Source of the DNA: Scyliorhinus canicula
Taxonomy: Eukaryota
DNA: 64,000 bases
Direction of reading: 5' to 3'
Assembly: GCF_902713615.1 (NCBI RefSeq)
Contig: NC_052158.1
Span: forward strand, 17,914,546 to 17,978,545
Position 1 is the stretch's first letter. Each line of letters begins with the position of its first letter. Positions 1,462 through 64,000 of the stretch are shown here, one piece after another. The notes beneath the pieces are model-generated. The model saw nothing but the letters and a program-made list of their open reading frames with translations. It made no database searches and was not told where the DNA came from. A program made the position numbers and the translations under genes.

Positions 1462-4400
1462 ATGGCATCTCCAGATCTCACACAGGAACTAACCTGTCCC
1501 ATCTGTCTGGAGATATTCACCCACCCGGTGTTTCTGGAATGTGGGCATCATTTCTGCAGCTCCTGCATCTCCCAGAGTTGGCAGAAGGTCCCGGGAGATG
1601 TTTCCTGCCCCCAGTGTCGACAGGTCTTCACCCAGAGGAACGTCAGGCCCGCTCGGACCCTCATTAACATCGTGGAGAAGGTTAGAGAGGTGAAGGTGAA
1701 GGTGACACAGCCACAGGAGGAGTTTTACTGTCAGGAACACGAGGAGAAGCTGAAACTCTTCTGCGAAGATGAACACAAAGCGATCTGTCTGGTGTGTGGG
1801 ATGTCCAGAGCTCATAAGACGCACAGTGTGATCCCAATAAAGGAGGCAGCCCAGATCTTCAAGGTACTGGATCACTGCTCCTGCCACAGGTAGATGGGGA
1901 AGAGGGACAGGGTGTAAGTCACAGAGAGAGAGAGTGTTTGTAGAATGTGGGGAGGGGAAGAGAGAGCGGGAGAGACAGGGATAGGGAAGGGGAGAGGGAT
2001 GTTGAAAGAGGAGAGGGTTGGAGCGAGTAGAGGATTGATTGAGGAGGGGAATTAACCTGGAGGAGGATAATTGCAACAAACAGAATTAATCCACAGCTTC
2101 TACTTTGTTTATTGAGTGTAATCAATCCTGAGAATATCTCCTTCTCTACCTCACTGGCCTCACTCTATTTAAACACAGCAAACTCCCCCAGAAGGTGACA
2201 ATGATTGTTTCCTTTGATAAACCCATTTGTGTCCTTTCTGTCTCAGAACAAGTTAGAAACATCATTGGAAACTCTGCAGAAGCAAATGGACCTCAGTCTT
2301 CACAGTAAAAGAGAACGAGAGGATGGGATTTTCCACATGAAGGTAGGAGAGTGTCCTTTAGGCTTTGTGTAAACTTCCCTGTGTTTGTTATTCAGAGTGA
2401 GTGAGCTTCTCACACAGTCAGAGAGAGAGTTTTACTGAATAAAATCCAAAGTACACTGCGGGCTTCTCCCTGAACTGCAATATAAGGGACCGTCTGTAAA
2501 TTGCAGATTATTATAACAATGTTTAAATGTATTATTTTCTCTCTCAAGCCAATCCCATCGATTGATGAAATAAATCATGTGTGTAACTCACTCCCGGGGA
2601 TCCATTATTCTATATATGAACCATCGATTAGAATCCCCTCGATTAGATTCCAGTCTGTAACTCACTCCCGGCGATCCATTATTCTATATATGAACCATCG
2701 ATTAGAATCCCCTCGATTAGATTCCAGTCTGTAACTCACTCCCAGGAATCCATTATTCTATATATAAACCATCTCAACCCCTTGATTAGATTCCAGTCTG
2801 TAACTCACTCCCAGGAAATCATTATTCTATATATAAACCATCTCAACCCCTCGATTAGATTCCAGTCTGTAACTCACTCCCAGGTATCCATTATTCTATA
2901 TATAAACCATCTCAACCCCTCGATACGATTCCAGTCTGTAACTCACTCCCAGGTATCCATTATTCTATATATAAACCATCTCAACCCCTCGATTCGATTC
3001 CATTCTGTAACTCACTCCCAGGTATCTATTATTCTATACATAAACCATCTATACCCCTCGATTAGATTCCAGTCTGTAACTCACTCCCAGGTATCCATTA
3101 TTCTATATATAAACCATCTCAACCCCTCGATTCGATTCCAGTCTGTAACTCACTCCCAGGTATCCATTATTCTATATATAAACCATCTATACCCCTCGAT
3201 TAGATTCCAGTCTGTAACTCACCCCCAGGTATCCATTATTCTATATATAAACCATCTGAACTTCTCGATTAGAATCCAGTCTGTAACTCACCCCCAGGTA
3301 TCCATTATTCTATATATAAACCATCTGCATTCCGCGATTAGATTCCACTCAGTGACTCAGTCCTTGATGCCTATTATTTAATAATAAACGATTGGAATCA
3401 CTATATCATGTTTGTAACTCAGTCCCACATAGCTAAAGTTCCATCAAACTGTTCAGCCGGCAGTGAGCTGTTATCGTTTGTTATCCTTGCTGGATATAAA
3501 TTTTTATCCCTATATCCCAGTGGACAGAGACCATGGAGACTGGGATTAAGAACGTTGTTTATTCCGTTCTGTATTCAATCTGTTCCAGGCTGAAGTTGAC
3601 AGACTGAGAAATGAAATCAACAGTGAATTTGAAAAGATGCACAAGTTCCTGTTTGAGAAGGAGGAGCTGATGAAAGCAGAGTTGGAGAGAAAAAGCAATA
3701 AAATATTCGAGGAAATGGAGAACAATTTAACCAAAACCATGGATGAAATCTCTTCTCTTGAAGCAGCAATAAGAGATCTTAAATCGAGGCTGGAGGTACA
3801 ACTGGCCCCAGAGTTCCTCAAGGTACAAAATCTCTTTGTCTTGTCCAGTGAAACATTCCAGAGACGGAGGGCAGGCACTCTGACCTTTAACCTCTGGGTT
3901 TGGTTTAGGCCTCAGTCTGATTGGTTGGATGATTGTCTCTTTGTGCTGTCAGTAAGGGTCCAATGGGAAATGAGGTGAGATAATCTCAGTGTAATTCCTA
4001 TACACAGCGTAACCACGGCGCTGATTGATGATTGGACTCCGAGAGAGATGGGCTGGGAACTGGAGATGTTTACACTGCTGCAGATGGAGTTCTACTGAGA
4101 TCTGCTGAGGACGGGTTAAAGTGCATTATTGCAGGGGTGATGGAGCTATGGTTAGAGAGAAAAGAATGGGAACGGGTGAGGGTAGAACGCCCAGCTGGAC
4201 AACAGTGGAGAGGCGGTGGAGGAGGATGGTGTGATCGACCATGTCAAAGGCTGCAGACTGACCGGGAATAATGAGGAGGGAAAGTTTGTAAGGATGGGTT
4301 TTTTGGGGAGAGGGGTGAAGATGTAGATTTAAATGAGAGAGAGGGCCAACAGCTGAAGAGATGAAACAGTTTACAATCCCAGCTAACATGGGGGCCAGGA

Positions 4401-7400
4401 GGGGAGGTTGGGAGATCAGTAGTTTTTGGGAATTGGATGGAGGGGACAGGAGGTGGGTCTCATGGACAAGATGAGCTCCGAGAGGGAATGAAAGGAAAAT
4501 GTAAAAGTTATTTTCTAATTGAAATCTTGGTCTCTCAATTTCTACTCGAGATTTACAACAAGAACTCTTTAATCTGACTCGATCATATCTATTCTGTTTC
4601 TTTCCCCTCAGGATATTCAAGACCTGTTGTTGAGGTAAGCAGATATAAAGAAACAGTTTTGTGATGTGATCACTGCTGTCTCTCTAACACACACTGATTT
4701 CCAGACCTGTTTTTACAGGAGTCAGATGGAGTTTCACAAGCCTGGAACTGTCTCCACTCAGTTACCTGTGGCTATCGCTGGTGAACCAGTCAAATACATC
4801 AAAGTGTGGAGGGAAATGAGAGCCGTGATTTCACCAGGTATCATTCTCTGTATATTACTGTCTCCCTGCTGTTATCCACGTCATTAATGAGGTTTGACAC
4901 ACTGATGAAATGATCAGAAGATCAGAAGGAATAAGAACAGGAGTGGTCCAGCCCAGTGAACCTGCTCTGATTTTTGATCAGATCATGTCTGATCTGATTG
5001 TGGCCTTTACTCCACTTTCCTGCCTGTCCCAGATGACCCTTAACCACCCTGTTAATCAACAATTTGTGGAACTTGGTCATGAATCAATGACGCAGCCTCT
5101 GCTGCTCTCTGTGGTAGAGAATTCCAAAGACTAATATCCCTCTCCGAGAAGGAATTCCTCCTCATCTCTGTCTTCAATAGAGGCCCCTTCATGTAATGCT
5201 GTGTCACCTACACCTCGATTGACCCGGAGATCAAACATCCTCCCAGCATCTACCCTGGTGAAGGAATCCCCTCAAAATGTTATGTTTCAATAAGATAACC
5301 TCTTATTCTTCTAAACTCCAGTGAGTATAGACCCAACCAGCTCACCTTTCCTCATAAGGCAATCCCTTCATCCCAGGAATCAGCCCAGTGAACCTTCTCT
5401 GAACTCTGTCCAATAGAGTCTCTCCCTCCTGATGTAAGGAGATCAGATCTGAACACAGTACTCAAGCTGCAGTCTCACCAATCCCCTGTAAAGTTGGAGC
5501 AAGTCTTCCCTACTTTACACTCCATCCCTTTTCCAATTAAGGCCAACATTCCATTTCTTTCCCACATTCCTTGCTGCACCTGGACACTAGCTTTTAGTGA
5601 TTGATGTACAAGGTCCCCCAGATCCCTCTGTACTGCAGCATTCTGCTGTCTCTTTCTATTGAAATAATTTGCTGCTATTCTATTCTTCCAAAGCTCCCAT
5701 TTTCCCACATTATACTCCATCTGCTAAATCTTTGTCCACTCACTTAACCGGTCTATATCCCTCCGCAGACACTTTGTATCCTCCTCACAACTTCCCGACC
5801 TAACTTTGTGGCATCAGAAAATTTGGCTCCAGCATATTCGGTTTCTTCATCCAATCAGGAATATTGATCATAAATAGTTGTATCCCCATCACTGATCAGT
5901 AATCTCGGGAATTTGCAAAGATTACAACCAATGAATCCACTTTCTCTCCAGCCCCTCCTTTAAAATCCTGGGATTACGGACATCAGGGCCAGGGGACAAG
6001 TTGCCTTTAATCCCGTTAGTTTTGCAGATATTTTTTCTCTGGTGATCATGATTGTTCAAAATGTATCCCTCCCTTTTCCCTCCTGCTTTTCCCCAACACT
6101 GGATGACCCCATGTATTGTTCTCTGTATATTGTTGGGTATTTTTCTTTCCCCAGGTTATAAGAAAACATTTATTTAACAATATTTTGACATTTCTGAGGG
6201 ACATTGCCAGACCTCAGCACAGAGCACCTATTGGTCCCCACATGCCCCGTTGCTAAGACTGATACGCTTCCCCTCACTCCGTACACCAGTTACCATGACT
6301 ACACTCTGTCCGCTTCTGTGGCCAAGAACAGGAACTCCCAACTTAGGCAGACATCACCTTCTGTCTCTCCCTCAGCACTTTGCCTTGCTGTGAATGGAAT
6401 TCAGTTCAGAGAAGTGTGAGGTTAATGTATTGGGAGAGGGAAGATATGACAAGGGAATAGACAATAAGTGGTAAGATAGTGAGAGGTGTGGAGGAACAGA
6501 GGGAGATTTGAGTTTATCTCCACAGATTCAGGACAGGTGGATAAAGTGGTGACGATAACACACCGGATATTTTCCTGTACTGACCACGGAATAGAAAATA
6601 AGCGCTGGGAGCTAATGTCGGAACTTTATTAAACACTAGGTAGTCTACAGCTAGAGTACTTAGTATCTTTCTGGTCAGTGTGTTGGAGAGGTTACCGAGG
6701 AGATTAATGAGGGTGTTGGCTGGTTCAGAGAACATGAGTTCTGCGTTATGATTGGATAGATTGGGGTTGTTTTCATTGGATCAGAGGAGGCTGAGGGGAG
6801 ATTTAGTTGAGGTGTATAAAATTAGGAGTGTCCAGATAGAGTGGAAAGGAAATCCCGAGTCCCATTGCCTCGGGGTCCCTGATCAGGGAGAATAGATACA
6901 GGGTAAGAGGGAGGAGGGTTAAAGGGATTATTTTCACACACAATGTGGTCTAGATCTAGGACTCACAGCCTGAAAGGTTGATAGAGGCAGAAACCCTCAT
7001 AACATTTATTAAGTAATCAGATCTGCACTGAAAGTGCTGTAACCAAAAGAGTTACGGAGCAGGAACTGGAAACCGGGATTGGGCTGGAGAATTATTTTTC
7101 AGCCGAATCTCCCAGGTTGGTCTGAAATTGCCTCTTTCTGTGAATCCCAGAATGTTTACAAACTGAGAGGTGACCATTCGGTCCATTGTGTTCCTGCTAG
7201 CTCACTGCATAATCAACTCACCCAGGGCCATTCCTTCACCTTTTTCTCTGTCGCTCTGCAGATTTAAGTTCTTCAGTTAATGATTCAATTCCATATGAAA
7301 GCTATGATTGAATCTGATTCCACCACAGTGCATTCCTGATCCTAAACACTCGCTGTGTGAAAAGGTTTTTCCTCACGTTAATGTGGCTTCTTTTGTCAAT

Positions 7401-8470
7401 CAGTTTAAATTCTGTGTCCTCTGGTTCTCTTCTCTCAGTGGAACCACCTCAGCTTCTCCAATCTGTGTCCGTAACTGAATTTCCTCATCCCAGGAATCAT
7501 TGTGGTGAATGTTTCCTGCTCTCTCTCTAATGCCCTCACATCCTCCCTCAAAGTGTGTTTCCCAGATCAGAGTTGAGGGTTAACCAGTGTTTATACAGAT
7601 ATAACTTTGTCACTCTATTCTGTGTTAATAAAGCCTAAGATGCTGTATTCTTTATTAACCACTCTCTCTCCTTGTCCTGTCACCCCTAATTGTGAAATGA
7701 TATCCTGTGCATCAAGGTTTAGGTCATTAATTTACATCAGGAAAGTCAGAACCCTTTGAACACCAATGTATATCTATCTTCAGTCTGAACAAGCAACAAC
7801 TGTCATTCACCCCGTTTCATATCCATGTTGCTACTGTCCTCGTTATTCTGTATATTTTCTATGTTTCTGCCTGTTAGGGTGACTGTTCCCCTGTTGCCAC
7901 GGAGACTAGGGAACATACGAGGAGGTTAAAGGGCAAAACCGTGTATTGAGATATTGAAGTTATTTCTCTGTCATTTAGATGTCAATTTTCCACCAGGATC
8001 ACTCCTTCCAGCTCTACAGCCCCCTTGTCCTGGCTGAGATCTCAGAGGGGGGTGTAGGGCTGGAGGAGGAGAGCCCACTCCCTTTTCCTGACTGAGATCT
8101 TGGAGGGGGTGTAGGGCTGGAGCGGTGGAGCCCACCCCCTTGTCCTGGCTGAGACCTCAGAGGGGGGTGTAGGGCTGGAGGAGGAGAGCCCAGCCCCTTG
8201 TCCTGACTGATATCTCGGAGGGGGGTGTAGGGCTGGAGGAGGAGAGCCCACCCCTTGTCCTGACTGAGATTTCGGAGGGGGGGGGGGTTGTAGGGCTGGA
8301 GGGGGAGAGCCCATCCATTTGTCCTGACTGAGATCTCGGAGGGGAGGGGGTTGTTGGGCTGGAGGAGGTGACAGAGATAGGGGACGCGATTCTCCGCTCC
8401 CCATGCCAGGTGGGAGAATAGCGGGAGGGCCTGGCGACTCATTTCACGCCCCCCTGACGCTTCCAGCGAT

Positions 8471-8501
<31 letters not shown>

Positions 8502-10273
8502 CTCGGAAGAATCAGCGCTCGCTGTTTTTCACAGCGACCGCCGACTCTCCGACCCGGATGGGCCGAGCGGCCGGCCGTTTGCGACCGTTTCACGTCGGCG
8601 GCAAACACACCTGGTCGCTGCCGTCGTGAAAACGCCGTAAGATGCCCGTTTGGGGCTTGTAGGGGGACTGGTGGGGACTGAGCACCACGACTGTTCTCGG
8701 GAGGGGACAGGCCTGCAATCGGTGCCCACCGATGGTCGGGCTGGCGTCTCAACGGGACGCACTAATTCCCCTCCACCGCCCCACAAGATCAAGCCGCCAC
8801 GTCTTGCGGGGCGGCTGAGAGGGAAGACGGCAACTGCGCATGCGCGGGTTGGAGCTGGCCAATCTGCGCATGCGCGGCTGACGTCACATAGGCGCCCTCG
8901 ACGGGCATTCTTGGTGCGCCAAGGCCCAGCAGTTGAGAATAAAGGAGCGCTGCTCCTAGCCCCCCGGGTGGGGGTGAAACTCAGCCAAGTTCACGACGGC
9001 CTTCACGATTTTTCCCGGGAGCGGAGAATCCCGCCCAGGGTGTGGGCAGTGAGAATTTTAAGATCGAGGCTGTTGGAACCAACAATTCTATGGGACATGT
9101 GCTTGTAGGATTAGAATAGCGGTTTTAATATACTCACAACAGAGCCAGCCTATTAGCCATTGAACTTTCGGTGAACTGGCCGGCTGACCATGTGGTACTG
9201 ATCTTTATACAGCAGCTTCCGGGGGAGGAGTCCTGGGCAGAGCCAAGGGAGACATCCCGTACAACTCGACCATTCCCAGCTACTCCCCCTGGAGGACAGG
9301 TAGTGCAACTGCACTTACAATATAGACACATGTATATACAGATTATAATCCGGTGTGAATCACATTCACCACAGAGGCATTGCTGGGTTCGAAGCTGATG
9401 TGGATCAGTGAGCACTGGGGGGGCTGAAATTGTCAACAGGGGACAACCAGTGTCAGATTCCAGTAGATTGAGTTCAGGGCGGTGACTGACTTCCTACAAC
9501 TCGTCTTCACCGAGGTCCTGGACTGGAGAGAGATCTTTATTCTCAGTGAATTGATGCTGATCTGAGCTGAGTGAATGGAGCTGAGGGAATGGGGAGGAAT
9601 TTCTTCAGACACTCTGTCGCTGAGCTTCCACAGTTCCTGCGCTGTGGAAAGTGGTGATGTCCCATCACCGTCTGTACACGTCCCGTCATTCACTCCTGTT
9701 TTTCTTATAGTAACAGCTTCCCAATCATGTTCTCTTCCAGTTCCAGCATCTCTCACCCTGGACCTGGAGACAGCAAACAGCGGACTCATCATTTCACAGG
9801 ATCTGACTAGTGTGAGGGACGGAAGTGAGGAGCCAGATCGACCTGATCATCCGAAAAGATTTGAAATGAGCTTGTATGTTTTGAGCTCCCAGAGTTTCAC
9901 ATCAGGGAGACACTACTGGGAGGTGGGTCTTGGAAACAAACCTCTCTGGATTGTGGGTGTCTGCAGAGAGTCTGTCGACAGGAAAGCATACATCTCAGAG
10001 TCAGCTGAGAATGGATTCTGGACCATCGCCCGGCTTTCTAGCGGCAAATTATTGAAGATCCCAGGTGTCATCTCCCAGCTGGAAGTGAAAACCCGGAAGT
10101 TGGGAATTTACCTGGATTATGAGGGAGGACAGGTGTCATTTTACGATGCTGAGGACATGTCTCACCTGTACACCTTCACTGACACATTCACCGAAAAACT
10201 CTATCCCATCTTTAATCCCTGTAATAATGACTTTGGTGATAACTCTGAGCCACTCACATTGCTCTCTGGGTAA
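1462..10273 (+). CDS. TRIM E3 ligase copy 1 (RING-Bbox2-coiled coil-PRY/SPRY, class IV; TRIM35/39/69/A33-like), about 468 aa
   Basis: Exons 1462-1863, 2247-2342 (96 nt), 3589-3822 (234), 4612-4634 (23), 4719-4837 (119), 9741-10273. All introns GT-AG and phases compatible (1407 nt). C3HC4 RING CPIC..CGHHFC..C..CPQC, B-box CQEH..LFC..C..C..H..H, PRY LTLD, SPRY SGRHYWEV, LDYEGGQVSFY, LYPIF. Confidence 0.93.
2575..3360 (+). repeat. 69-bp minisatellite in intron 2 (about 11 units); paralogous arrays 16560-17125, 34430-34995, 45510-46255
   Basis: Unit ATTAGATTCCAGTCTGTAACTCACTCCCAGGTATCCATTATTCTATATATAAACCATCTSAACCCCTCG. Confidence 0.95.
4100..4500 (-). mobile_element. Degenerate L2-like LINE RT fragment in intron 3 (all four copies)
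   Basis: DLSAAFDTVDH.ILLHRL motif in ORFs 4126-4620, 17895-18158 and 47018-47224. Confidence 0.7.
4915..7800. mobile_element. Patchwork of old CR1 remnants in intron 5 (minus about 4915-6060, plus about 6390-7100, minus about 7160-7800), shared by all copies
   Basis: MEYNVGKWE, VQRDLGDLVHQSLK, RRLRGDLI motifs, heavily decayed; boundaries approximate. Confidence 0.7.
8015..8372. repeat. About 59-bp G-rich minisatellite in intron 5; paralogous at 26468-26875, 39655-39882, 50175-50348
   Basis: Unit CCCCTTGTCCTGRCTGAGATCTCRGAG(G)nTGTAGGGCTGGAGGAGGAGAGCCCAC, 3-7 copies. Confidence 0.9.
8382..9036. mobile_element. GC-rich non-autonomous TIR element (PIF/Harbinger-type MITE), copy 1 only
   Basis: Ends GGACGCGATTCTCCGCTCCC and GGGAGCGGAGAATCCCGCCC are inverted repeats; 3-bp TSD AGG; absent at about 26882. 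Confidence 0.82.
9071..9373 (-). mobile_element. Solo LTR (303 bp), copy 1 intron 5
   Basis: TGTTGGAA...TTCACCACA termini; 5-bp TSD GAGGC (9066-70, 9374-78); empty site TGAGGCATTGC at about 26911; TATA and ATTAAA on the minus strand. Confidence 0.8.
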
Positions 10274-15347: not shown

Positions 15348-15402
15348 TCACGTGAAGTGAAATCCAGGAAGTGCAGAGCTGAACAGGAATTGAAAGTGAA
15401 AG
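15348..15402 (+). promoter_or_regulatory. Proximal promoter, copy 2 (E-box/ETS/ISRE)
   Basis: GAAAGTGAAA at 15392-15401; same module as copy 1. Confidence 0.7.
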
Positions 15403-15442: not shown

Positions 15443-18400
15443 ATGGCATCTCCAGATCTCACACAGGAACTAACCTGTCCCATCTGTCTGGAGATATTCA
15501 CCCACCCGGTGTTTCTGGAATGTGGACATCATTTCTGCAGCTCCTGCATCTCCCAGAGTTGGCAGAAGGTCCCGGGAGATGTTTCCTGCCCCCAGTGTCG
15601 ACAGGTCTTCACCCAGAGGAACGTCAGGCCCGCTCGGACCCTCATTAACATCGTGGAGAAGTTCAGAGAGGTGAAGGTGACACAGCCACAGGAGGAGTTT
15701 TACTGTCAGGAACACGAGGAGAAGCTGAAACTCTTCTGTGAAGATGAACACAAAGCGATCTGTGTGGTGTGTGGGATGTCCAGAGCTCATAAGACGCACA
15801 GTGTGATCCCAATAAAGGAGGCAGCCCAGATATACAAGGTACTGGATCACTGCTCCTGGCACAGGTAGATGGGGAAGAGGGACAGGGTGGAAGTCACAGA
15901 GAGAGAGAGTGTTTGTAGAATGTGGGGAGGGGAAGAGAGGGCAGGAGAGACAGGGATAGGGAAGGGGAGAGGGATGTTGAAAGAGGAGAGGGTTGGAGCG
16001 AGTAGAGGATTGATTGAGGAGGGGAATTAACCTGGAGGAGGATAATTGCAATAAACAGAATTAACCCACAGCTTCTACTTTGTTTATTGAGTGTAATCAA
16101 TCCTGAGAATATCTCCTTCTCTACCTCACTGGCCTCACTCTATTTAAACACAGCAAACCCCTCCAGAAGGTGACAATGATTGTTTCCTTTGACAAACCCA
16201 TTTGTGTCCTTTCTGTCTCAGAACAAGTTAGAAACATCATTGGAAACTCTGCAGAAGCAAATGGACCTCAGTCTTCACAGAAAAAGAGAACGAGAGGATG
16301 GGATTTCCCACATGAAGGTAGGAGAGTGTCCTTTAGGCTCTGTGTAAACATCCCTGTGTTTGTTATTGAGAGTGAGTGAGCCCCTCACACAGACAGAGAG
16401 AGTTTTACTGAATAAAATGCTGCTGCTCCAAAGTACACTGCGGGCTGCTCCCTGAACTGCAATATAAGGGACCGTCTGTAAATTGCAGATTATTATAACA
16501 GTGTTTAAATGTCTTACTTTCTCTCTCAAGCCAATCCCATCGATTGTTGAAATAAATCATGTCGGTAACTCACTCCCGGGGATCCATTATTCTATATATG
16601 AACCATCTGAACCCCTCGATTAGATTCCAGTCTGTAACTCACTTCCAGGAATCCATTATTCTATATATAAACCATCTCAACCCCTCGATTAGATTCTAGT
16701 CTGTAACTCACTCCCAGGTATCCATTATTCTATATATAAACCATCTGAACCCCTCAATTAGATTCCAGTCTGTAACTCACTCCCAGATATCCATTATTCT
16801 ATTTATAAACCATCTGAACCCCTCGATTAGATTCCAGTCTGTAACTCACTCCCTGGTATCCATTATTCCATATATAAACCATCTGAACCCCTCGATTAGA
16901 TTCCAGTCTGTAACTCACTCCCAGGTCTCCATTATTCTATATATAAACCATCTGAACCCCTCAATTAGATTCCAGTCTGTAACTCAGTCCCAGGAATCCA
17001 TTATTCTATATATAAACCATCTGAACCCCTCAATTAGGTTCCAGTCTATAACTCACTCCCAGGTATCCATTATTCCATATGTAAACCATCTGAATTCCAC
17101 AATTAGATTCCACTCAGTGACTCAGCCCTTGATGTCTATTATTTCATAATTAACCACTGGAATCACTTTACAATGTTTGTTTGTAACTCACTCCCACATA
17201 GCCAATATCCCATCAAACTGTTCAGCCGGCAGTGAACTGTTATTGTTTGTTATCCTTGCTGGATATAAATTTTTATCCCTATATCCCAGTGGACAGAGAC
17301 CAGGGACACTGGGATTATAAACGTTGTTTATTCCATTCTGTATTCAATCTGTTCCAGGCTGAAGTTGACAGACTGAGAAATGAAATCAACAGTGAATTTG
17401 AAAAGATGCACAAGTTCCTGTTTGAGAAGGAGGAGCTGATGAAAGCAAAGTTGGAGAGAAAAAGCAATAAAGTATTCGAGGACATGGAGAACAATTTAAC
17501 CAAAACCATGGATGAAATGTCTTCTCTTGAAGCAGCAATAAGAGATCTTAAATCGAGGCTGGAGGTACAACTGGCCCCAGAGTTCCTCAAGGTACAAAAT
17601 CTCTTTGTCTTGTCCAGTGAAACATTCCAGAGACTGAGGGCGGGCACTCTGACCTTTAACCTCTGGGTTTGGATTAGGCCTCAGTCTGATTGGTTGGATG
17701 ATTGTCTCTTTCTGCTGTCAGTCAGGGTCCAATGGGAAATGAGGTGAGATAATCTCAGTGTGATTCCTATACACAGCGTAACCACGACACTGATTGATGA
17801 TTGGACTCCGAGAGAGCTGGGCTGGGAACTGGAGATGTTTACTCTGCTGCAGATAGAGTTCTACTGAGATCTGCTGAGGACGGGTTAAAGTGCATTATTG
17901 CAGGGGTGATGGAGATATGGTTAGAGAGATAAGAATGGGAGCGGGTGAGGGTAGAACACCCAGCTGGACAACAGTGGAGAGGCGATGGAGGAGGATGGCG
18001 TGATCGACCGTGTCAAAGGCTGCAGACAGATCGGGAAAAATGAGGAGGGAAAGTTTGTAATGATGGATTTTTTGGGGAGAGGGGTGAAGATGTAGATTTA
18101 AATGAGAGAGAGAGACAACACCTGAAGAGATGAAACAGTTTACAATCCCAGCTAACATGGGGACCAGGAGGGGTGGTTGGGAGATCAGTAGTTTTGGGAA
18201 TTGGATGGAGGGGACAGGAGGTGGGTCTCATGGACAAGATGAGCCCCGAGAGGGAATGAAAGGAAAAAGTAAAAGTTATTTTCTAATTGAAATCTTGGTC
18301 TCTCAATTTTTACTCGAGATTTACAACAAGAACTCTTTAATCTGACTCGATCATATCTATTCTGTTTCTTTCCCCTCAGGATATTCAAGAGCTGTTGATG

Positions 18401-33217: not shown

Positions 33218-33272
33218 TCACGTGAAGTGAAATCCAGGAAGTGCAGAGCTGAACAGGAATTGAAAGTGAAAG
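33218..33272 (+). promoter_or_regulatory. Proximal promoter, copy 3 (E-box/ETS/ISRE)
   Basis: GAAAGTGAAA at 33262-33271. Confidence 0.7.
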
Positions 33273-44299: not shown

Positions 44300-44354
44300 T
44301 CACGTGAAGTGAAATCCAGGAAGTGCAGAGCTGAACAGGAATTGACAGCGAAAG
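44300..44354 (+). promoter_or_regulatory. Proximal promoter, copy 4, with degenerate ISRE
   Basis: GACAGCGAAA at 44344-44353 replaces GAAAGTGAAA; the E-box and ETS sites are retained. Confidence 0.65.
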
Positions 44355-47300: not shown

Positions 47301-50300
47301 TGGGAGATCAGTAGTTTTTGGGAATAGGATGGAGGGGACAGGAGGTGGGTCTGATGGATAAGATGAGCTCCGAGAGGGAATGAAAGGAAAGTAAAAGTTA
47401 TTTTCTAATTGAAATCTTGGTCTAATGATTCTGTCCCTCTTCATAATTTCTACTCGAGATTTACAACAAGAACTCTTTAATCTGACTCGATCATATCTAT
47501 TCTGTTTCTTTCCCATCAGGATATTCAAGAGCTGTTGATGAGGTAAACAGATAAAAAGAAACAGTTTTGTGATGTGATCACTGCTGTCTCTCTAACACAC
47601 ACTGATTTCCAGACCTGTTTTTACAGGAGTCAGATGGAGTTTTACAAGCCTGGAACTGTCTCCACTCAGTTACCTGTGGCTATCGCTGGTGAACCAGTCA
47701 AATACATCAAAGTGTGGAGGGAAATGAGAGCAGTGATTTCACCAGGTATCATTCTCTGTATATTACTATCTCCCTGCTGTTATCCACATGATTAATGAGG
47801 TTTGACACACTGATGAAATGATCAGAAGATCAGGAATAAGAACAGGAGTGGTCCAGCCCAGTGAACCTGCTCTGATTTTTGATAAGATCATGTCTGATCT
47901 AATTTGGGCCTTTACTCCACTTTCCTGCCTGTCCCAGATGACCCTTAACCCCCTTGCTGATCAACAGTCTATGGAACTCGATCATGAATCAATGACCCAA
48001 CCTCTGCTGCTCTCTGTGGTACAGAATTCCAAAGACTAATATCCCTCTCCGAGAAGGAATTCCTCCTCATCTCTGTCTTCAATAGAGGCCCCTTCATTTG
48101 ATGCTGTGTCACCGACACCTCGATTGTCCCAGAGATCAAGCATCCTCCCAGCATCTACCCTGGTGAAGGAATCCCCTCAGAATGTTATGTTTCTATAAGA
48201 TAACCTCTTATTCTTCTAAACTCCAGTGAGTACAGACCCATCACTGATCAGTAATCTCGGGAATTTGCAAAGATTACAACCTATGCATCCACTTTCTCGC
48301 CAGCCCCTCCTTTAACATCCTGGGATGCAGGACATCAGGTCCAGGGGACGAGTTGTCTTTAATCCCATCGCTTTTCCAGATACTTTTTCTCTGATGATCA
48401 TGATTGTTTTAAGTTTATCCCTCCCTTTCCTTCCTGCTTTTCCCCAACACTGGATGACCCCAGCTGTTGTTCTCTGTATATTGTTGGGTATTTCTCTGTC
48501 CCCAGATTATAAGAAAACATTTATTTAATGATATTGCCAGTCCTCAGCACAGAGCTCCGATTGGTCCCCACATGCCCCGTTGCTAAGACTGATACTCTTC
48601 CCCTCACTCCATATACCAGTTACCATGACTACATTCTGTCCCCTTCTGTGACCCAAGGACAGGAACTCCCAACCTAGGCAGACTTCACCTTCTGTCTCTT
48701 CCTCAGGATTTTGTCTTGCAGTTCAGAGAAGTGTGAGGTTAATGTATTGGGAGGGGGAAGATGTGGCAAGGGAATAGACAATAAGTGGTAAGATAGTGAG
48801 AGGTGTGGAGGAACAGAGGCAGATTTGAGTTTATCTCCACAGATTCAGGACAGGTGGATAAAGTGGTGACGATAACACACCGGATATTTTGCAGTCCTGG
48901 CCAAGGAATAGAGAATAAGAGCAGGGATGTAATGTCAGAACTTTATTAAACACGAGTTAGTCTACAACTAGAGTACTTTATATCTTTCTGATCAGTGTGC
49001 TGGTGAGGTTACCAAGGAGATTAATGAGGGTGTTGGCTGGTTCAGAGAACTTGAGTTCTGCGTTATGATTGGATAGATTGGGGTTGTTTTCATTGGATCA
49101 GAGGAGGCTGAGGGGAGATTTAATTGAGGTGTATAAAATTAGGAGTGTCCAGATAGAGTGGAAAGGAAATCCCGAGTCCCATTGCCTCGGGGTCCCTGAT
49201 CAGGGAGAATAGATACAGGATAAGAGGGAGGAGGGTTAAAGGGATTATTTTCACACACAATGTGATCTGGATCTAGGACTCTCAGCCTGAAAGGTTGATA
49301 GAGGCAGAAACCCTCATAACATTTATAAAGTAATCAGATCTACAGTGAAAGTTTTGTAACCAAAAGTGTTATGGAGCAGAAACTGGAAACTGGGATTGGG
49401 CTGGAGAATTCTATTTCAGCCGAATCTCACATGTTGCTCTGAAATTGCCTCTTTCTGTGAATCCCAGAATAGTTACAAAACTATGCATTCCTGATCCTAA
49501 ACACTCACTGTGTGAACAGGTTTTCCCTCACGCTAATGTGGCTTCTTTTGTCAATCAGTTTAAATTCTGTGTCCTCTGGTTCTCTTCTCTCAGTGGAACC
49601 ACCTCAGCCTCTCCAATCTGTGTCCATAACTGAATTTCCTCCTCCCAGAACCATTGTGGTGAATGTTTCCTGCACTCTCTCTAATGCCCTCACATCCTTC
49701 CTCAAAGTGTGTTCCCAGAACAGAGTTGAGGGTTAACCAGTGTTTTATACAGATATAACTTTGTCACTCGATTCTCTATGTTAATAATAAAGCCTAAGAT
49801 GCTGCATTCTTTATTAACCACTTTCTCTCCCTGTCCTGGCACCGCTAATTGCGAAATTATATCCTGTGCATTAAGGTTTAGGTCATTAATTTACATCAGG
49901 AAAGTCAGAACCCTTTGAATACCAATGTATATCTATCTTCAGTCTGAACAAGCAACAACTGTCGTTCACCCCGTTTCATATCCATGTTGCTACTGTCCTC
50001 GTTATTCTGTATATTTTCTATGTTTCTGCCTGTTAGGGTGACTGTTCCCCTGTTGCCAGAGACTAGGGAACATACGAGGAGGTTAAAGGGCAAAACCGTG
50101 TATTGAGATATTGAAGTTATTTCTCTGTCATTCAGATGTCAATTTTCCACCAGGATCACTCCTTCCAGCTCTACAACCCCCTTATCCTGGCTGAGATCTC
50201 GGAGGGGGATGTAGGGTTGGAGGAGGAGAGCCCACCCCCTTGTCCTGGCTGAGATCTCAGAGGGGGGGGGGGGGGGTAGGGCTGGAGGAGGAGACCCCAC

Positions 50301-51520
50301 CCCCTTGTCCTGACTGAGATCTCGGTGGAGGTTGTAGGGCTGGAGGAAGTTACAGAGATACTGGCTGGGAGGATGCCGTGTAGACATTTAAGTTTGAGAT
50401 ATGTCTGGGTCAGAAGGCGATGACGGTCAGTGAGAATGGGGTCTTGGAAACGGGGAAGGTGAGGAGGATCACGAGGGGGGAGGGGGGGAAGGTGGTTGGT
50501 GATGGGTGTATGGGTCTTGGTGGAAGTTATGACTGTGGGCAGCAGAATTTGGATGAGCTCACGCTTCCGTTTCGGGTTCCACGTTGAAAATAAATGAACG
50601 CACATCCAGACTCCCCCTTGACTGTTGTGTACAGAGCAGTGAGACAGTTAATGTTTCAATCCCATTCACAAATTGAAAAACGTGTCAACACTGTCCAAAA
50701 AATGTCACTACAGGCTGGACACAGGGCAGTGACCGACTTCCTACAACTTGTCTTAACCGAGGTCCTGTACTGGAGAGAGATCTTTATTCTCAGTGAATTG
50801 ATGATGATCTGTGCTGGGTGAATGGAGCTGAGGGAATGGGGAGGAATTTCTTCAGACACTCTGTCCCTGAGCTTCCACAGTTCCTGGGCTGAGGAAAGTG
50901 GTGATGTCCCATCACCGTCTGTTCACGTCTCATCATTCACTCCTGTTTTTCTTATAGTAACAGCTTCCCAATCATGTTCTCTTCCAGTTCCAACATCTCT
51001 CACCCTGGACACAGAGACAGCAAATGACGGACTCATCATTTCCCAGGATCTGACTAGTGTGAGGTACAGAAATGAGCAGCAACCTCGACCTGATCATCCT
51101 AAAAGATTTGATAAAAACTTAGATGTTTTGAGCTCTCAGAGTTTCACATCAGGGAGACACTACTGGGAGGTGGGTCTTGGAAACAAACCTCACTGGATTT
51201 TGGGTGTCTGCAGAGAGTCTGTCAACAGGAAAGGAAACATCACAGAGTCACCTGAGAATGGATTCTGGGTCATCGCCCGGTTTCCTGACTGCAAATCATT
51301 GAAATTCCTGGATGTCATCTCCCAGCGGAAAGTGAAACCCCGGAAGTTGGGAATTTACCTGGATTATGAGGGAGGACAGGTATCATTTTACGATGCTGAG
51401 GACATGTCTCACCTGTACACCTTCACTGACACATTCACTGAGAAACTCTATCCCATCTTTAATCCCTGTAATAATAACTCTGGTAATAACTCTGAGCCAC
51501 TCACACTGCTCTCTGGGTAA
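44395..51520 (+). CDS. TRIM E3 ligase copy 4 (RING-Bbox-CC-B30.2), about 466 aa
   Basis: Exons 44395-44790, 45174-45269, 46481-46714, 47520-47542, 47627-47745, 50988-51520; GT-AG, open frame (1401 nt). Confidence 0.92.
45609..45946 (+). mobile_element. tRNA-derived V-SINE (HE1-like) inserted in the 69-bp array of copy 4
   Basis: Pol III B box GGTTCGATTCC; V-domain GGGTTTCCTCCGGGTGCTCCGGTTTCCTCCCAC; 3' tail CAACATCGAGGGCCGA..GTTCTATGTTCTAT shared with the CR1 tails at 1081-1142 and 61100-61155. Confidence 0.88.
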
Positions 51521-56186: not shown

Positions 56187-56201
56187 CCAGCAGATGGCGT
56201 C
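56187..56201 (+). promoter_or_regulatory. CTCF-like motif, spacer 4
   Basis: CCAGCAGATGGCGTC. Confidence 0.5.
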
Positions 56202-56961: not shown

Positions 56962-57945
56962 GAGAGACTTGTAAATATTGGGAGACGGAAGGATTTGTGT
57001 ATCCATGAAGCAGAGAACGTTTATTTTAATGTATTTTATTCCAAATAAATTCAATAATGGAAAAACAAGCAACCTGGGGAACATTCCCCCAGCACACAAT
57101 GTTACAATCTGTACAAATGTTTCCATTTTACACATTCCACCCCCCTCGTGATGAACAATTCCTCAAACGTGGCCACCGACGATCCCCACCGTTTGGGGAT
57201 CAGAATCCCCTCAGATATGGGAGTCACTGAGGAATCCAATAGGGAATTCAGGAGAAACATCTTTACCCAGAGCGGGATTAGAATGAGGAGGTCACTGCCG
57301 TTCACTGGGAACAGGGCAGGGGACTGGGGTAAAATAGAGGGAGTGGGTCCTTGCCACCAGTTCAGTGCTGGACTCACTCTGACTGGGTTTGGGGATGGAT
57401 ACGAGGCCCTTGTTTCAGGTGAAGCAACATTTTAAAGTCTGGGCTCGATGGCAGCATTTACACTCACAGTGACTCCCAGTGGGAGTCAATGGAAAGGGAT
57501 ATTGTCCAGAGTGTTCAACAAGAGGCTGATTCACTGTCTCCCATTGAGTGCTGCCACCCCAGTCGAATATCCTATTAATGAGCATCACTGTCTCAGTAAC
57601 ATGTCTTGTGAGATGATCACAAACTGTGGGTGAGGCAATAGCAGAATCAGCTTCACGATTTGTTCAAACTAACAGAAGATTAACAAGCGGATGGAGCAGG
57701 AACTGAACAAGAATTTAAAGATGTTATTGGGCAGTCAATGTCCCAGCTCCTGATGTCTAAATGTGATCTGGTGGCTGACAGAGCCTGTCCCTTCATCACT
57801 CTCCAGTAAATTGAAGCACTCCCCAGGTAGGGGGGTGGTGTATGTGTGTGTCTGTGTCAGGGTCTGTCTGTCTCTGTGTGGGAGGGTCTGTGTGTGTGAG
57901 GGTCTCTGACTGGGACTGGAGACTCCCCTCAGGACAGTTTCCAGC

Positions 57946-58541
57946 TGAAGTGGGAAATGGGCAGAAGGGTACTTGGCACACAAGATGGCTGCCTGACACA
58001 CAAGATGGCGACACATAGAATAAAGCAGACATAACTGATACCTGGAGCCCAGCGGGATGCCAGTGGGACAGATAGGAACAGATCCAGGACAAAGGGAGCC
58101 AGACAGGAAGATTTAAAAATACATAAATGCAGGACACCACTTGAATAAAGCTGACTTCAGCCAAGGTGTACACAATGATATGCTAATACAAATATCTTGG
58201 GCCATTTCCTAAAACAAAGGGACAATCGATACTGCTTTCCTGCTGCTACCTGTAGCCTGTAAAATCTCTTTAACTATAACCATGTGGAAATGGCAAAACG
58301 CTTACAAATAGCGATGTACAATGTATAAAATGTTTAAAGATAACAAGGTGATAATTGTTTTGTATCTGGGCTCATTGTGAACCCAAAGTATAAAATGAAT
58401 GACGGCCATTCAAACCATGTGAAAAGTTGGCTACCGTACCGCGGGGTACGGACGCTTTCTCCCGAAGCTTTGTGTAACAATAAACTGCACTGATTGAACA
58501 CAGCAAGTCTGACTCCCGAAGTGGTTGATTTCCCCACAACA
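57946..58541 (+). repeat. ERV 5' LTR
   Basis: TGAAGTGGGAAAT...ATTTCCCCACAACA; two YY1-like CAAGATGGC (57981, 58001); TATAAAA near 58389; AATAAA at 58479. Confidence 0.88.
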
Positions 58542-58544
58542 TAT

Positions 58545-58562
58545 TGGCGTAGTCGGCAGGAT
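58545..58562 (+). promoter_or_regulatory. Primer-binding site, tRNA-Ser(AGA/TGA)
   Basis: TGGCGTAGTCGGCAGGAT is the 18-nt complement of the vertebrate tRNA-Ser 3' end (ATCCTGCCGACTACGCCA). A splice donor TG|GTAAGT follows at 58573. Confidence 0.85.
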
Positions 58563-59225
58563 CTTACTTCTGGTAAGTTCCGATCGAAGGCCTCGATCGA
58601 AAAGTCAGGTTAAAGATAATTTCGAATCTGCAGGAGTCAGACAGGTCAAAAGGTGCAGTTTAAACTAAGGTACCTATAGTGATCAGCATAGTGATATCAG
58701 TCTTGCCTATATAGTGACATGATAATAGATAAAGTTTGGTACTAACTGCTGATAGTATTCAGGATTTGTGGCTTGTGCTGATCAACAAACAGACAAGGTT
58801 GTGCTGCCCAAAATGCCCAGCCTTAGACTGGCTGTCAAGAGGAGGAATGTCCCACGCCAAGGTCAGGATTTGAAGTGGGTATTGAGGCACCAAAGGCACT
58901 AAGGATTGTGAAGCACAAGTGGCAGAAATCGGCTAACCCTGAACTCTGTAGTGGCGAACAAACGCAGAGTTCTTGTATGAAAATAGAGCATAGGTTGGGT
59001 ACTGGGCTGTCAAATATCTTATTAGCGGAGCGGAAAAGGAGCTGATCAACTCTGACCTAGTGCCGAACTCCGGTGGAGAAGCACGTTGCCGAGGTGGTAA
59101 TAGTGGACACCGTGAGTATAAGTCAAACCCTGAGAAGACGGTAGCAATAACGCGGTGCTGGAATAGTAATAGTGGCTGGGGGGTAGTGAAGTCCCTTCAG
59201 TAGAGAGCACACTTTACTCATAGTA

Positions 59226-59261
<36 letters not shown>

Positions 59262-59969
59262 ATTGAAGTCTGCGAGATGGCGGGCAATGATATAAAAAGG
59301 GGATCTGCAGGTTCTCTTATCGAGACATATATGACAGACAGACAAGCGTTGATAAAAAAGATGAAGCAGGACGGCTGGGACACTTCCCAGACCTTAGAAC
59401 AACAGAGGGGTTGGATAGACAAAGAGAAGAGAAACAAGACTAAAAGATAGGGATAATGTTAGTACATCACTTAGCAGGACTAATTGAACAAGTAGGCACC
59501 TCTACTGAAAAGTGGAAGGAAGACAAAGAGAAGATCAGGGAATTATAGTAAGGGAACTGGAGAAACACAATCACGTGTTGAGAGAACAACAAGGGAGGGG
59601 GGAAACTGATCCCCTACCCCCTTACGAGCCCACACAGCAGGGGCTAACCGCCCCTCCGGCAGGGTGGGGTGCGTTAGAATACAATTTAGTGCCAGTAACA
59701 CGAGGGGGAACAGATGCGCAGCCAAAAGCAAATTATAAACCCTTTACCCCAGGTGAGAGGCTGCAGGTAATGGCTTCCCTGGGAAAATTACAACCTAGAA
59801 ATGCAAACACCAAATTCTGGGACGAATTAGACACAATCTGGGTAGGCCATTGTAGCAATGAGGGAGGATTCTATTCCGCAGTAGTGACACAGGACCATGG
59901 CGACAAGAGGAGACCCATAGGGTACTATCCGACTGCAGAGGGACCGACAGTCACCGGGTTGCCAAGTTG

Positions 59970-61155
59970 ATGTGGTGTATATGGATTTCAGTAAAGCGTT
60001 TGATAAGGTTCCCCATGGTCGGCTATTGCAGAAAATACGGAGGCTGGGGATTGAGGAGATTTAGAGATGTGGATCAGAAATTGGCTAGTTGAAAGAAGAC
60101 AGAGAGTGGTGGTTGATGGGAAATGTTCAGAATGGAGTTCAGTTACGAGTGGCGTACCACAAGGATCTGTTCTGGGGCCGTTGCTGTTTGTCAATTTTAT
60201 AAATGACCTAGAGGAGGGCGCAGAAGGATGGGTGAGTAAATTTGCAGACGACACTAAAGTCGGTGGAGTTGTAGACAGTGCGGAAGGATGTTGCAGGTTA
60301 CAGAGGGACATAGATAAGCTGCAGAGCTGGGCTGAGAGGTGGCAAATGGAGTTTAACGTGGAGAAGTGTGAGGTGATTCACTTTGGAAAGAATAACAGGA
60401 ATGCGGAATATTTGGCTAATGGTAAAATTCTTGGTAGTGTGGATGAGCAGAGGGATCTCGGTGTCCATGTACATAGATCCCTGAAAGTTGCCACCCAGGT
60501 TGATAGGGTTGTGAAGAAGGCCTATGGTGTGTTGGCCTTTATTGGTAGAGGGATTGAGTTCCGGAGCCATGAGGTCATGTTGCAGTTGTACAAAACTCTG
60601 GTACGGCTGCATTTGGAGCATTGTGTACAGTTCTGGTCGCCTCATTATAGGAAGGACGTGGAAGCTTTGGAACGGGTGCAGAGGAGATTTACCAGGATGT
60701 TGCCTGGTATGGAGGGAAAATCTTATGAGGAAAGGCTGATGGACTTGATGTTGTTTTCGTTAGAGAGAAGAAGGTTAAGAGGTGACTTAATAGAGGCATA
60801 CAAAATGATCAGAGGGTTAGATAGGGTGGACAGCGAGAGCCTTCTCCCGTGGATGGAGGTGGCTAGCACGAGGGGACATAGCCTTAAATTGAGGGGTAAT
60901 AGATATAGGACAGACGTCAGAGGTGGGTTTTTTACGCAAAGAGTGGTGAGGCCGTGGAATGCCCTACCTGCAACAGTAGTGAACTCGCCTTCATTGAAGG
61001 CATTTAAAAGTTTATTGGATAAGCATATGGATGATAATGGCATAGTGTAGGTTAGATGGCCTTTAGTTTTTTTTTGGGTTTTTTTTACTTTCCATGTCGG
61101 TGCAACATCGAGGGCCGAAGGGCCTGTACTGCGCTGTATCGTTCTATGTTCTATG
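59970..61155 (+). mobile_element. 5'-truncated CR1 (HER1-like) LINE inserted into the ERV pol region
   Basis: ORF 60067-61050 is closely similar to ORF 22-1047; (GTTCTAT)n tail; removing it rejoins ERV codons CCA AGT TG|C ATA GCC. Confidence 0.95.
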
Positions 61156-62678
61156 CATAGCCGCTTTAGATTGTGCCGCCTGGGCCGTAAGAATTAGCGA
61201 AGCAGTAGTGATGGCAGGGAACACAATCCTCCAGACCAAGCACACCTTGGTGGAAACGTTAAATACGGGGAAAGTGAGGCCAGTCTCGAACATAAGGAGG
61301 GCCAAGTGGGAAGCTGTCCTCCTACCCCCAAGCAAGTCCGTAGTAATAGTAAGAGATATAGGGGAGAATCCAGCAGAAGGGATTTTAGATACAGGAGAGC
61401 CACACACCTGTGGAGATGTAGGCAGAGATGAAGGCGAAGGTAGAATAAAAGACACACCATTAACAACAGCTGAGGAGACCCTCTTTGTAGATGGGTCACG
61501 AAAATATGTGGAAGGATCACCCCAGACAGAGTGGGCAGTAGTGAATGATAAGTTAGAAACCATAAGGTCAGGAAGGATTGACGGAGGTCAATCTGCGCAA
61601 GTAGCTGAACTAGTGGCGCTCACACAGGCACTAGAGTTATCTGAGGGAACAACCGTGAACATATACACGGATAGCCGATATGCATTTGGAATTAGACATG
61701 ATTACATGACAACATGGGGAAGGAGAGGGTTCATAACCACGGGCGGAACCCCTATCAAACATCAGCAAAGAATTAAGGCGCTACTTAACAGCCAGTGAGA
61801 AACCCCGAGAAGCCACCGTAATCAAAATTAAAGCGCACCAGAAGGAGCCAGGAAGAGACAACCCGGATTGGTTGAATTTCAAAGGAAACCAAGCGGCTGA
61901 TGCAGCAGCACAACTGGCTCTAGAACAAAAACCAATTGGCGAGCTACCAATAGCAGCTACAGAACCAGTAGAAGAAGATACAGATATTAGGGAATTACAG
62001 GAGAACACCCCAAGTGAGGAGAGAGAGAGATGGGAAGCGCAGGGTGCAGCCAAAGGGGCTGATAATGTTTGGAGACGAGAGGATAAGGTGATAGCACCGG
62101 AATGCCCTATTGGAATTACACCATGGGCTCTCGCATGTGGGTAGAGAGGCCATGATAACCAGCTTAGGTAGAGAATGGTGGTGGAAAGCGATGGGAAGAG
62201 ACATAGCCAGACACTGTCACCGATGCGTGATATGTGCGCAACACAACCCTGGTAAACCCATAAAAATTAAAATGGGACACCAGCCCAGACCCAAGGGTCC
62301 CTGGGAACACCTGCAAATGGATTTCACAGGGCCACTACCACAATCCCATGGAAAAACGTATTGTCTGGTCATCATAGACCAATTCACCCAGTGGGTAGAA
62401 GCATTCCCTACCAGACGTTGTACTGCTACCACGGTAGCCAGAATATTGGCAGAGGAAGTAATCCCTAGATGGGGAGTACCCCAACAAATTGATTCGGACC
62501 AGGGGACACACTTCACTGGGAAAGTGATAAAAACAGTATGTAAGCTGATGGGGATAAAACAAAAATTCCATATCCCCTATCATCCACAGAGTTCAGGGAT
62601 GGTGGAACGTATGAATAGAACACTTAAGAATACATTAGCTACCAGGAGGGGGGGATTGGGGATTGGGATTATGGCTCA

Positions 62679-63368
62679 ACAAAGGGAGCCATACAGGAAG
62701 ATTAAGAAATACATAAATGCAGGACACGACTTGAATAAAGCTGACTTCAGCCAAGGTGTACACAATGATATGCTAATACGAATATCTTGGGCCATTTCCT
62801 AAAACAAAGGGACAATCGATACTGCTTTCTTGCTGCTACCTGTAACCTGTAAAATCTCTTTAACTATAACTATATGTAAATGGCAAAACGCTTACAAATA
62901 GCGATGTACAATCTATAAAATGTTTAAAGATAACAAGGTGATAATTGTTTTGTATCTGGGCTCATTGTAAATCCTCTTTAACTATAACCATGTGTAAATG
63001 GCAAAACACTTACAAATAGCGATGTACAATGGATAAAATGTTTAAAGATAACAAGGTGATAATTGTTTTGTATCTGGGCTCATTGTAAATCCTCTTTAAC
63101 TATAACCATGTGTAAATGGCAAAACACTTACAAATAGCGATGTACAGTGTATAAAATGTTTAAAGATAACAAGGTGATAATTGTTTTATATCTGGGCTCA
63201 TTGTGAACCCAAAGTATAAAATGAATGACGGCCATTCAAACCATGTGAAAAGTTGGCTACCGAACCGCGGGGTACGTACGCTTTCTCCCGAAGCTTTGTG
63301 TAACAATAAACTGCACTGATTGAACACAGCAAGTCTGACTCCCGAAGTGGTTGATTTTCACCACATCA
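62679..63368 (+). repeat. ERV 3' LTR with a 118-bp unit triplicated
   Basis: Homologous to 58089-58541; units 62849-62966, 62967-63084, 63085-63202; polypurine run AGGAGGGGGGGA at about 62644. Confidence 0.88.
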
Positions 63369-63372
63369 CAGC

Positions 63373-64000
63373 ACAAACACTTTAATTCAGTCAGAGGCAA
63401 CAACAAATTACATTTATATAGCGCCTTCAATGCAGTAAAACATCCAAAGGGACTCGACAGCAGCGTCAATCAGACAACAATATTTGAGACTGAATCTGTT
63501 CTTCTCCCCAAAGGCAGAGAATGTGCAGCATCTGAGAAATGAGCAGCTCCAACACACCATTGTCCCTGTTCACTCCAGTTACAGAAACTCTGCACCAACT
63601 TTCCATCTTCCTGTCCAGAAGCTGATCAGAGAGGTTCCGGCAGGATTGAGGGGGGAAAGATGGGCCCGGATTTAGGAGGGAGAGAGACTCTCCAGGAATT
63701 TGGAGAAGGGGGAGGTTGGAAATGGGGGTGGACATGTTCAAAAAGATGTTTTTTGTCAGAATGAGGGTCAGATGGTGACAGGATGGAGAGAGGATAAGGA
63801 GGGGCTCAGGGATGAGATGGATTTGGAAAGGACTTGGGGGGGGGGGGGGGGGGGAGGGAGAGGAGAGAAACTAGAGAAAGATGTGGGGGTGAAGGGGGGA
63901 TGTTTGGTCAGTGGGTTGGGGGGCAGGAGGTTAGTAACAGAAACAGCTGTAAGGATGGTCTGGATTGTAACTAAGAAAGCCATTGCTGAGTTCCTCACAC
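63373..64000 (+). other. Upstream region of a probable fifth TRIM copy (ATG predicted near 64270, outside the window)
   Basis: Colinear with 14542-15170, which ends about 270 nt before the copy-2 ATG. Confidence 0.75.

Follow-up and report, generated by a model that had tools for sequence, protein, structure and literature searches.

A tandem array of intact class IV TRIM genes in the catshark Scyliorhinus canicula: a proposed interferon-regulatory-factor-responsive, diversifying repertoire

We analysed a window of 64,000 nt from the genome of the catshark Scyliorhinus canicula (NC_052158.1, positions 17,914,546 to 17,978,545 of the forward strand; positions below are relative to this window). 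It holds four class IV TRIM genes, each intact and of six exons, arranged head to tail, all on the + strand, with products of 462 to 468 amino acids (aa). Our preferred reading, to which we give a probability of roughly 0.55, is that the window covers part of a genuine tandem array of TRIM E3 ligases that was amplified recently, and that the array is a diversifying, pathogen-binding repertoire responsive to interferon regulatory factors (IRFs). As we picture it, the proteins would dimerise through their coiled coils, the loops of the B30.2 domain would recognise a range of ligands, of which pathogen proteins are the most plausible, and the RING domain would carry out ubiquitination. IRF/ISGF3-type factors would drive the transcriptional response, and the repertoire would gain diversity as genes duplicate, loops acquire point changes and paralogues exchange sequence. 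Judged from sequence, "restriction factor" is a working hypothesis for these genes.

Results

Four intact TRIM genes lie head to tail

An earlier reading of this DNA (the original prediction) had described four intact head-to-tail paralogues from a probable shark genome. Open reading frames (ORFs), splice sites and identity with RefSeq proteins of S. canicula bear out both statements. The start codons are at 1462, 15443, 33313 and 44395, which gives exactly the predicted spacings of 13981, 17870 and 11082 bp. All four exon 1 ORFs open with MASPDLTQELTC and end at a donor reading AAG/GTACTG or AGG/GTACTG after 396–402 nt. The other exons were called as open intervals bounded by AG..GT and having the expected lengths, with one conserved candidate per exon per unit. 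Internal exons of 96, 234, 23 and 119 nt are followed by a terminal B30.2 exon of 521–533 nt in every unit. No extra small exon was found in any of the four, and the predicted layout, which lacked an added 27-nt exon, thus holds for the whole set. Splice sites are canonical GT..AG throughout and all spliced frames are open. The four units (U1–U4) are as follows.

U1, 1462..10273, + strand: 468 aa; exons 1462-1863, 2247-2342, 3589-3822, 4612-4634, 4719-4837 and 9741-10273; 100% identical to P0157 over its full length
U2, 15443..27811, + strand: 466 aa; exons 15443-15838, 16222-16317, 17358-17591, 18380-18402, 18487-18605 and 27279-27811; 93% identical to P0153
U3, 33313..41014, + strand: 462 aa; exons 33313-33708, 34092-34187, 35228-35461, 36251-36273, 36358-36476 and 40494-41014; 97% identical to P0158
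U4, 44395..51520, + strand: 466 aa; exons 44395-44790, 45174-45269, 46481-46714, 47520-47542, 47627-47745 and 50988-51520; 100% identical to P0156 over its full length

P0157 and P0156 are S. canicula RefSeq proteins named "zinc-binding protein A33-like". Because the U1 and U4 models equal these entries, the genes are already annotated. The matches of U2 and U3 (P0153, P0158) are other catshark cluster representatives. The exon 5–6 junction chosen here (acceptor 9741 and its homologues) agrees with the RefSeq models. Exon 1 of U1 (1462-1863) is 402 nt long against 396 nt in the other units and carries a 6-nt, two-codon (VK) insertion in the linker between RING and B-box.

By Pfam, exon 1 encodes a RING and a B-box in all four units, and the terminal exon encodes PRY and SPRY. 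The RING (zf-C3HC4_4, E = 1.7e-12) keeps eight of eight C3HC4 zinc ligands in each copy. The B-box (zf-B_box, E = 5e-11), which is single and of type 2, has its C-H-C-C-C-H-H spacing intact in 4/4 copies. An AlphaFold (AF2) model built on a 70-sequence alignment, with a predicted local distance difference test score (pLDDT) of 82, comprises RING, B-box, a long helix, linker helices and a beta sandwich at residues 297-466; the predicted coiled coil is one helix, 126-234, with pLDDT 83-90. Compared by sequence with solved structures, RING and B-box are nearest to TRIM21, and B30.2 is nearest to BTN3A, pyrin, TRIM7 and TRIM21 in the PDB (E from 5e-42 to 1e-37). With RING, B-box 2, predicted coiled coil (together RBCC), PRY and SPRY all present, the four products have the complete domain set of class IV (RBCC-B30.2) TRIM proteins. 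The intact RING suggests that they would have E3 ubiquitin-ligase activity.

RNA contigs drawn from four public runs show the joints between exons 1 and 2 and between exons 2 and 3, and connect exon 3 with exon 5 through the sequence of exon 4. The exon 1–2 joint of U3, 33708/34092, appears with GT..AG, and at U4 contigs of the family join exons 1-2, 2-3 and 3-4-5. The contigs differ by a few letters from every copy in the window. The TRIM family is therefore transcribed and, over exons 1 to 5, spliced as modelled, yet because no contig matches a window copy exactly, the transcripts are not assignable to particular copies.

Variation is concentrated in the B30.2 loops

The prediction that sequence variation would be concentrated in B30.2 proved correct, and the variable sites are in its predicted loops. 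Variable columns among the four proteins number 58 of 177 in B30.2 and 31 of 291 in the rest of the protein (odds ratio 4.1, p = 6e-9). Pairwise non-synonymous divergence (dN) is 0.09-0.11 in B30.2 and 0.01-0.035 in the remainder. When 13 catshark copies are considered, 14 of the 15 sites with at least four residue types fall in B30.2, and 13 of these 14 are outside the strands; mean entropy is 0.54 for non-strand B30.2 against 0.17-0.18 elsewhere. The variable stretches (319-337, 355-360, 368-383, 390-410 and 451-462) lie between strands of the predicted sandwich, and we take them to correspond by position to the variable loops of TRIM5 and TRIM21.

Exon 6 has diverged more than its surroundings, by 9.5-10.2% against 5.8-6.0% in 960 bp of its own non-coding flanks (p = 2e-5 to 5e-4). 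Each of the three possible four-taxon topologies is backed by informative sites in this exon (6, 6 and 3 sites), and stretches of concordant sites are interspersed with conflicts between neighbouring bases, at codons 333-334. Both the excess divergence and the conflicting sites fit diversifying pressure with exchange between paralogues. Codon counts used the two phylogenetically independent pairs, U1–U3 and U2–U4 (four coding sequences in all). The ratio of dN to synonymous divergence (dS), omega, was 0.45 for the RBCC part, 0.50 for the B30.2 strands and 1.00 for the non-strand B30.2 codons.

An IRF-type motif lies at the start of the genes

The last 212 bp before the ATG are common to all four units. 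In U1, homology with the other units starts only at -212, owing to a long interspersed nuclear element (LINE) fragment upstream. The proximal module holds an E-box (CACGTG), GAAGTGAAAT and an ETS-like CAGGAAGTG, followed at -51 to -41 by a core of the IRF-element (IRF-E) or interferon-stimulated response element (ISRE) type. This core reads GAAAGTGAAAG in U1–U3 and is degenerate in U4, where it reads GACAGCGAAAG.

U1 proximal module, 1368..1421, + strand: CACGTG, GAAGTGAAAT, CAGGAAGTG and core GAAAGTGAAAG at 1411-1421
U2 proximal module, 15349..15402, + strand: ISRE-type core at 15392-15402
U3 proximal module, 33219..33272, + strand: ISRE-type core at 33262-33272; candidate transcript 5' end at 33245
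U4 proximal module, 44301..44354, + strand: degenerate core GACAGCGAAAG at 44344-44354, missed by the pattern search

The number of ISRE pattern matches in the window is not above chance (5 observed, 1.7 expected), and paralogous copies make up three of these matches. Since this count is at chance and conservation among recent duplicates is uninformative, the start regions were compared with those of loci in Heptranchias, Stegostoma and Pristis. In Heptranchias perlo, whose protein is 69% identical, the region just before the ATG can be aligned and the sequence farther upstream cannot. The alignable part contains CCAGGAAGTG and, at -48, GAAACTGAAAGT, the latter a full IRF-E/ISRE-type match; the tandem neighbour in the same species reads GAAACTGGAAG at the motif. 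Weaker versions stand at a matching distance from the ATG in sister-clade genes of the zebra shark Stegostoma (AGAACTGAAAGT) and the sawfish Pristis (AAAACTGAAAGC). The ETS site beside the IRF-type site is conserved as well. Because the motif is kept in Heptranchias and, weakly, in Stegostoma and Pristis, we consider it to be under long-term constraint. The IRF/ISRE-type element thus appears, from these alignments, to have been kept since the divergence of catshark and sevengill shark.

Transcript ends place the motif close to the start of transcription. Contig depth in run X16 climbs between 33214 and 33265. A loose end resembling a template-switch tail precedes 33245 (-68), and adapter precedes ~33274 (-39). 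The core is accordingly at or just past the transcription start, and the ETS-like site just before it. We also considered the TATA-like TATAAAT and TTTATAAAAG (-195 to -165) as the main start and rejected them: the contig downstream of them has low depth (~6), and depth rises ~20- to 70-fold from ~-90 towards the ATG.

An ISRE-type module had been predicted at each promoter. For U1–U3 this stands, with conservation in a hexanchiform shark; U4 has a degenerate core, and the cores lie at or after the 5' ends. An ISRE/IRF-E at the promoter, as expected for an interferon-stimulated gene, is thus found in the U1–U3 core and its Heptranchias counterpart. The motif makes interferon inducibility a hypothesis for the array.

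The genes belong to an elasmobranch subfamily that expanded by lineage

Catshark has at least 13 distinct full-length proteins of this family. On a tree of 66 proteins the Scyliorhinus copies form one clade (support 99), inside which those of S. torazame form their own (99). Mustelus, lamniform and batoid copies are each monophyletic, with support of 99-100 for the lineage clades; Heterodontus, Pristiophorus and Heptranchias are single rows each. Several copies each are present in S. torazame, Mustelus, lamniforms and Mobula. The predicted lineage-specific repertoire agrees with this tree, on which the copies cluster by lineage and no one-to-one orthologues of the catshark copies were seen. 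The picture is one of either repeated lineage-specific expansion or concerted evolution.

The Heptranchias gene has the same exon layout as the catshark genes, 399/96/234/23/119/533. A second tandem copy lies ~3.1 kb after the first gene at the H. perlo locus (L001, 18336-18782), its exon 1 being 86% identical. Because of this second copy, tandem duplication of the shark TRIM family is not confined to catsharks.

The closest reviewed proteins are A33 (38% identity), xnf7 (35-36%), TRIM39 (32-35%), TRIM69 (35-36%) and TRIM21 (33-35%). The A33, xnf7, TRIM39 and TRIM69 matches span the whole RBCC-B30.2 length, with E from 2e-48 to 5e-43. Neither TRIM35 nor TRIM5 is among the best 30 reviewed matches. 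The suggestion from exon layout that the genes would be closer to TRIM35/TRIM69 than to TRIM5/21/39 therefore finds no support, TRIM35 being outside the best 30 and TRIM69 level with TRIM39 and TRIM21.

A second tree was made with FastTree from cluster representatives, a set without named TRIM69, TRIM21 or TRIM35 references. In it the shark clade falls within a supported 20-row group, alongside "A33-like" genes of other cartilaginous fishes, an A33 from a teleost and one sturgeon gene. Outside this group stands a caecilian TRIM39, to which the identity is 44%. A coelacanth entry named "TRIM35" is part of an expansion in coelacanth, where its close relatives are named TRIM69, A33-like and TRIM39-like, and no tetrapod TRIM35 is among its hits. 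We dropped automatic names (TRIM35, TRIM69, A33-like, xnf7-like, TRIM39-like) as evidence of orthology, as they are inconsistent among close paralogues. By similarity and tree position, the catshark genes appear to be an elasmobranch subfamily inside an A33/xnf7/TRIM39/TRIM69-like group.

Discussion

Weighing the proposed repertoire against other explanations

Several observations weigh against an interferon-wired repertoire shaped by selection. U4 has lost the ISRE-type core, and where the core is kept it comes after the likeliest 5' end (-68). In one RNA contig, 24 foreign letters run into the AG at -57 (33256, and 44338), suggesting a leader exon. These 24 letters have no match within the window; they may represent the distal leader exon of another array copy beyond the window, or the contig could be chimeric. 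Expression evidence is at family level only, given the unassignable contigs. In the loops dS is raised too, so the contrast between exon 6 and its flanks carries less weight; mutation or conversion may lie behind this. The non-synonymous excess in the loops is not significant among the four copies, with omega ~1.0 and not above 1, and in the comparison with the orthologue from Heptranchias all regions have omega of 0.3-0.6. We make no claim of positive selection because of these values, and rapid diversification under selection is hypothesized here. Relaxed constraint after duplication would yield identical omega figures.

The last point leads to the strongest alternative, a neutral birth-and-death expansion of E3 ligases that act on host substrates (for example, as signalling regulators). 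Loop variation would then reflect relaxed constraint, and the GAAA-repeat element would serve constitutive or cell-type control by IRF and ETS factors. We regard this explanation as possible but rather unlikely. It accounts well for the loop omega values, both among the catshark copies and relative to Heptranchias, for the intactness of U4 despite the loss of its core motif, and for the conservation of the ETS site that adjoins the IRF-type site. It accounts less well for open frames and intact zinc ligands in 4/4 copies, for B30.2 strands that are constrained (omega 0.5) while the loops vary, and for an exon 6 that diverges more than its flanks. The independent expansion of the TRIM family in several lineages also argues against it.

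It is much less probable that the genes do what A33/xnf7 do in amphibians and act as nuclear or maternal developmental factors with no immune role. A33 and xnf7 are indeed the best reviewed matches (35-38%), and the RefSeq name points the same way, but automatic names are inconsistent among near paralogues, and the identities to TRIM39, TRIM69 and TRIM21 are nearly equal. Moreover, the matches begin at residue 134-152 of A33/xnf7, the shark proteins having no N-terminal extension. A multi-copy, loop-variable, lineage-specific array is also ill-suited to a conserved developmental factor.

An assembly artefact, with the copies being haplotigs or repeats that were collapsed or expanded, is barely credible: the window contains no N, the units differ by 2-10% in their introns, far beyond what is expected between alleles, and by distinct kilobase-sized transposon insertions, catshark has at least 13 distinct full-length proteins, and multiple copies occur in S. 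torazame, Mustelus, lamniforms and Mobula and two in tandem in Heptranchias; on divergence, the gap-free sequence and these copy numbers we reject the haplotig version.

Comparison with known TRIM expansions and significance

The finTRIM (ftr), btr (bloodthirsty-like, that is, trim39-like) and trim35-like (hltr) genes of teleosts are tandem, lineage-expanding sets with diverse B30.2 loops, and for some finTRIMs induction by virus or poly(I:C) is documented (PMC2657112, PMC3137616). The catshark genes share with these sets a structure of about six exons, the RBCC-B30.2 architecture, a B30.2 on one terminal exon and loop diversity. They differ in forming an elasmobranch clade and in having a single B-box, of type 2. 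Site models showed positive selection for ftr, btr and trim35, whereas omega in the catshark loops is ~1.0.

The mammalian TRIM5/TRIM22/TRIM6/TRIM34 cluster is likewise a tandem set of class IV TRIMs with variation in the PRY/SPRY loops, and the catshark loops also lie between strands. Genes of the TRIM5 cluster have interferon-responsive promoters, and the TRIM5 loops are named v1-v3. The differences are that TRIM5 is outside the best 30 reviewed matches of the catshark proteins and that catshark omega in the loops is not significantly above 1. A33 (Pleurodeles), xnf7 (Xenopus), TRIM39 and TRIM69 are the nearest reviewed proteins (32-38% identity), but the N-terminus of A33 and xnf7 is extended by ~130-150 residues that have no counterpart in the shark proteins. 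By analogy, the array may be regarded as the shark counterpart of the teleost ftr/btr/trim35-like sets and the mammalian TRIM5 cluster.

Type I interferons are present in sharks. A wider proposal, which we put forward tentatively and hold to be doubtful, is that cartilaginous fishes possess an IRF/interferon-wired, pathogen-recognising TRIM array of their own, arisen independently of teleost finTRIM/btr and the mammalian TRIM5 cluster, with loops renewed by point change and by exchange of exon 6 segments. If so, both the strategy of expanding and diversifying a TRIM sensor and its wiring to interferon would date to the base of jawed vertebrates. To our knowledge no restriction-factor-like gene family has been described from sharks, and our literature searches turned up no study of TRIM arrays in sharks or of interferon-stimulated genes in catshark.

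As a candidate the array is well defined, with intact genes, a transcribed family, lineage-specific expansion, diversity focused on the loops and a conserved IRF/ISRE-type element. Should the genes turn out to be induced and antiviral, expansion and diversification of class IV TRIMs would be a recurrent solution across jawed vertebrates, and the genes would provide tools for shark virology. Otherwise, the array would be an ordinary case of class IV TRIM birth and death, already captured by genome annotation.

Sequence surrounding the genes

The units are 85-97% identical across introns and flanks and differ in repeat copy number and transposon insertions. The original prediction had included the start of a fifth unit. 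Within the window this unit consists of upstream intergenic flank alone, split by a long terminal repeat (LTR) element and without coding sequence; by homology its ATG would lie ~280 bp past the window end.

57401..57905, + strand: fifth-unit upstream flank, part 1; 92% identical to 42878-43380 upstream of U4
57906..63377, + strand (sense): LTR retroelement of ~5.5 kb; LTRs at ~58089-58531 and 62679-63357; pol ORFs with RNase H and integrase
60067-61050: LINE reverse transcriptase (RT) fragment nested inside the LTR retroelement
63378..64000, + strand: fifth-unit upstream flank, part 2; 93% identical to 43488-44113; stops ~280 bp before the expected ATG
23064-25894, - strand: endonuclease and RT ORFs of a LINE in intron 5 of U2 (intron of 8673 bp)
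52832-54075: pogo/Tc5-like DDE transposase in the spacer after U4, in two overlapping frames (HTH_Tnp_Tc5, DDE_1)
2582-3363, 16561-17124, 34433-34982 and 45947-46218, + strand: 69-bp satellite, within intron 2 of each of the four units
12528-12855, 30027-30767 and 55577-55842, inverted: 69-bp satellite in every intergenic spacer
8020-8344, 26457-26872, 39657-39880 and 50176-50347: G-rich repeat of 58-59 bp in intron 5 of each unit

The 3' LTR of the spacer retroelement contains a 118-bp unit in three copies. Copy number of the 69-bp satellite ranges from about 4 to 11. The G-rich repeat, present in 2.8 to 7.1 copies, lies ~0.6-1.4 kb upstream of the B30.2 exon. A very high-copy repeat at 45531-46014, in intron 2 of U4, is transcribed from both strands, with an RNA-contig word depth of ~9e5; it is probably a short interspersed nuclear element unrelated to expression of the gene.

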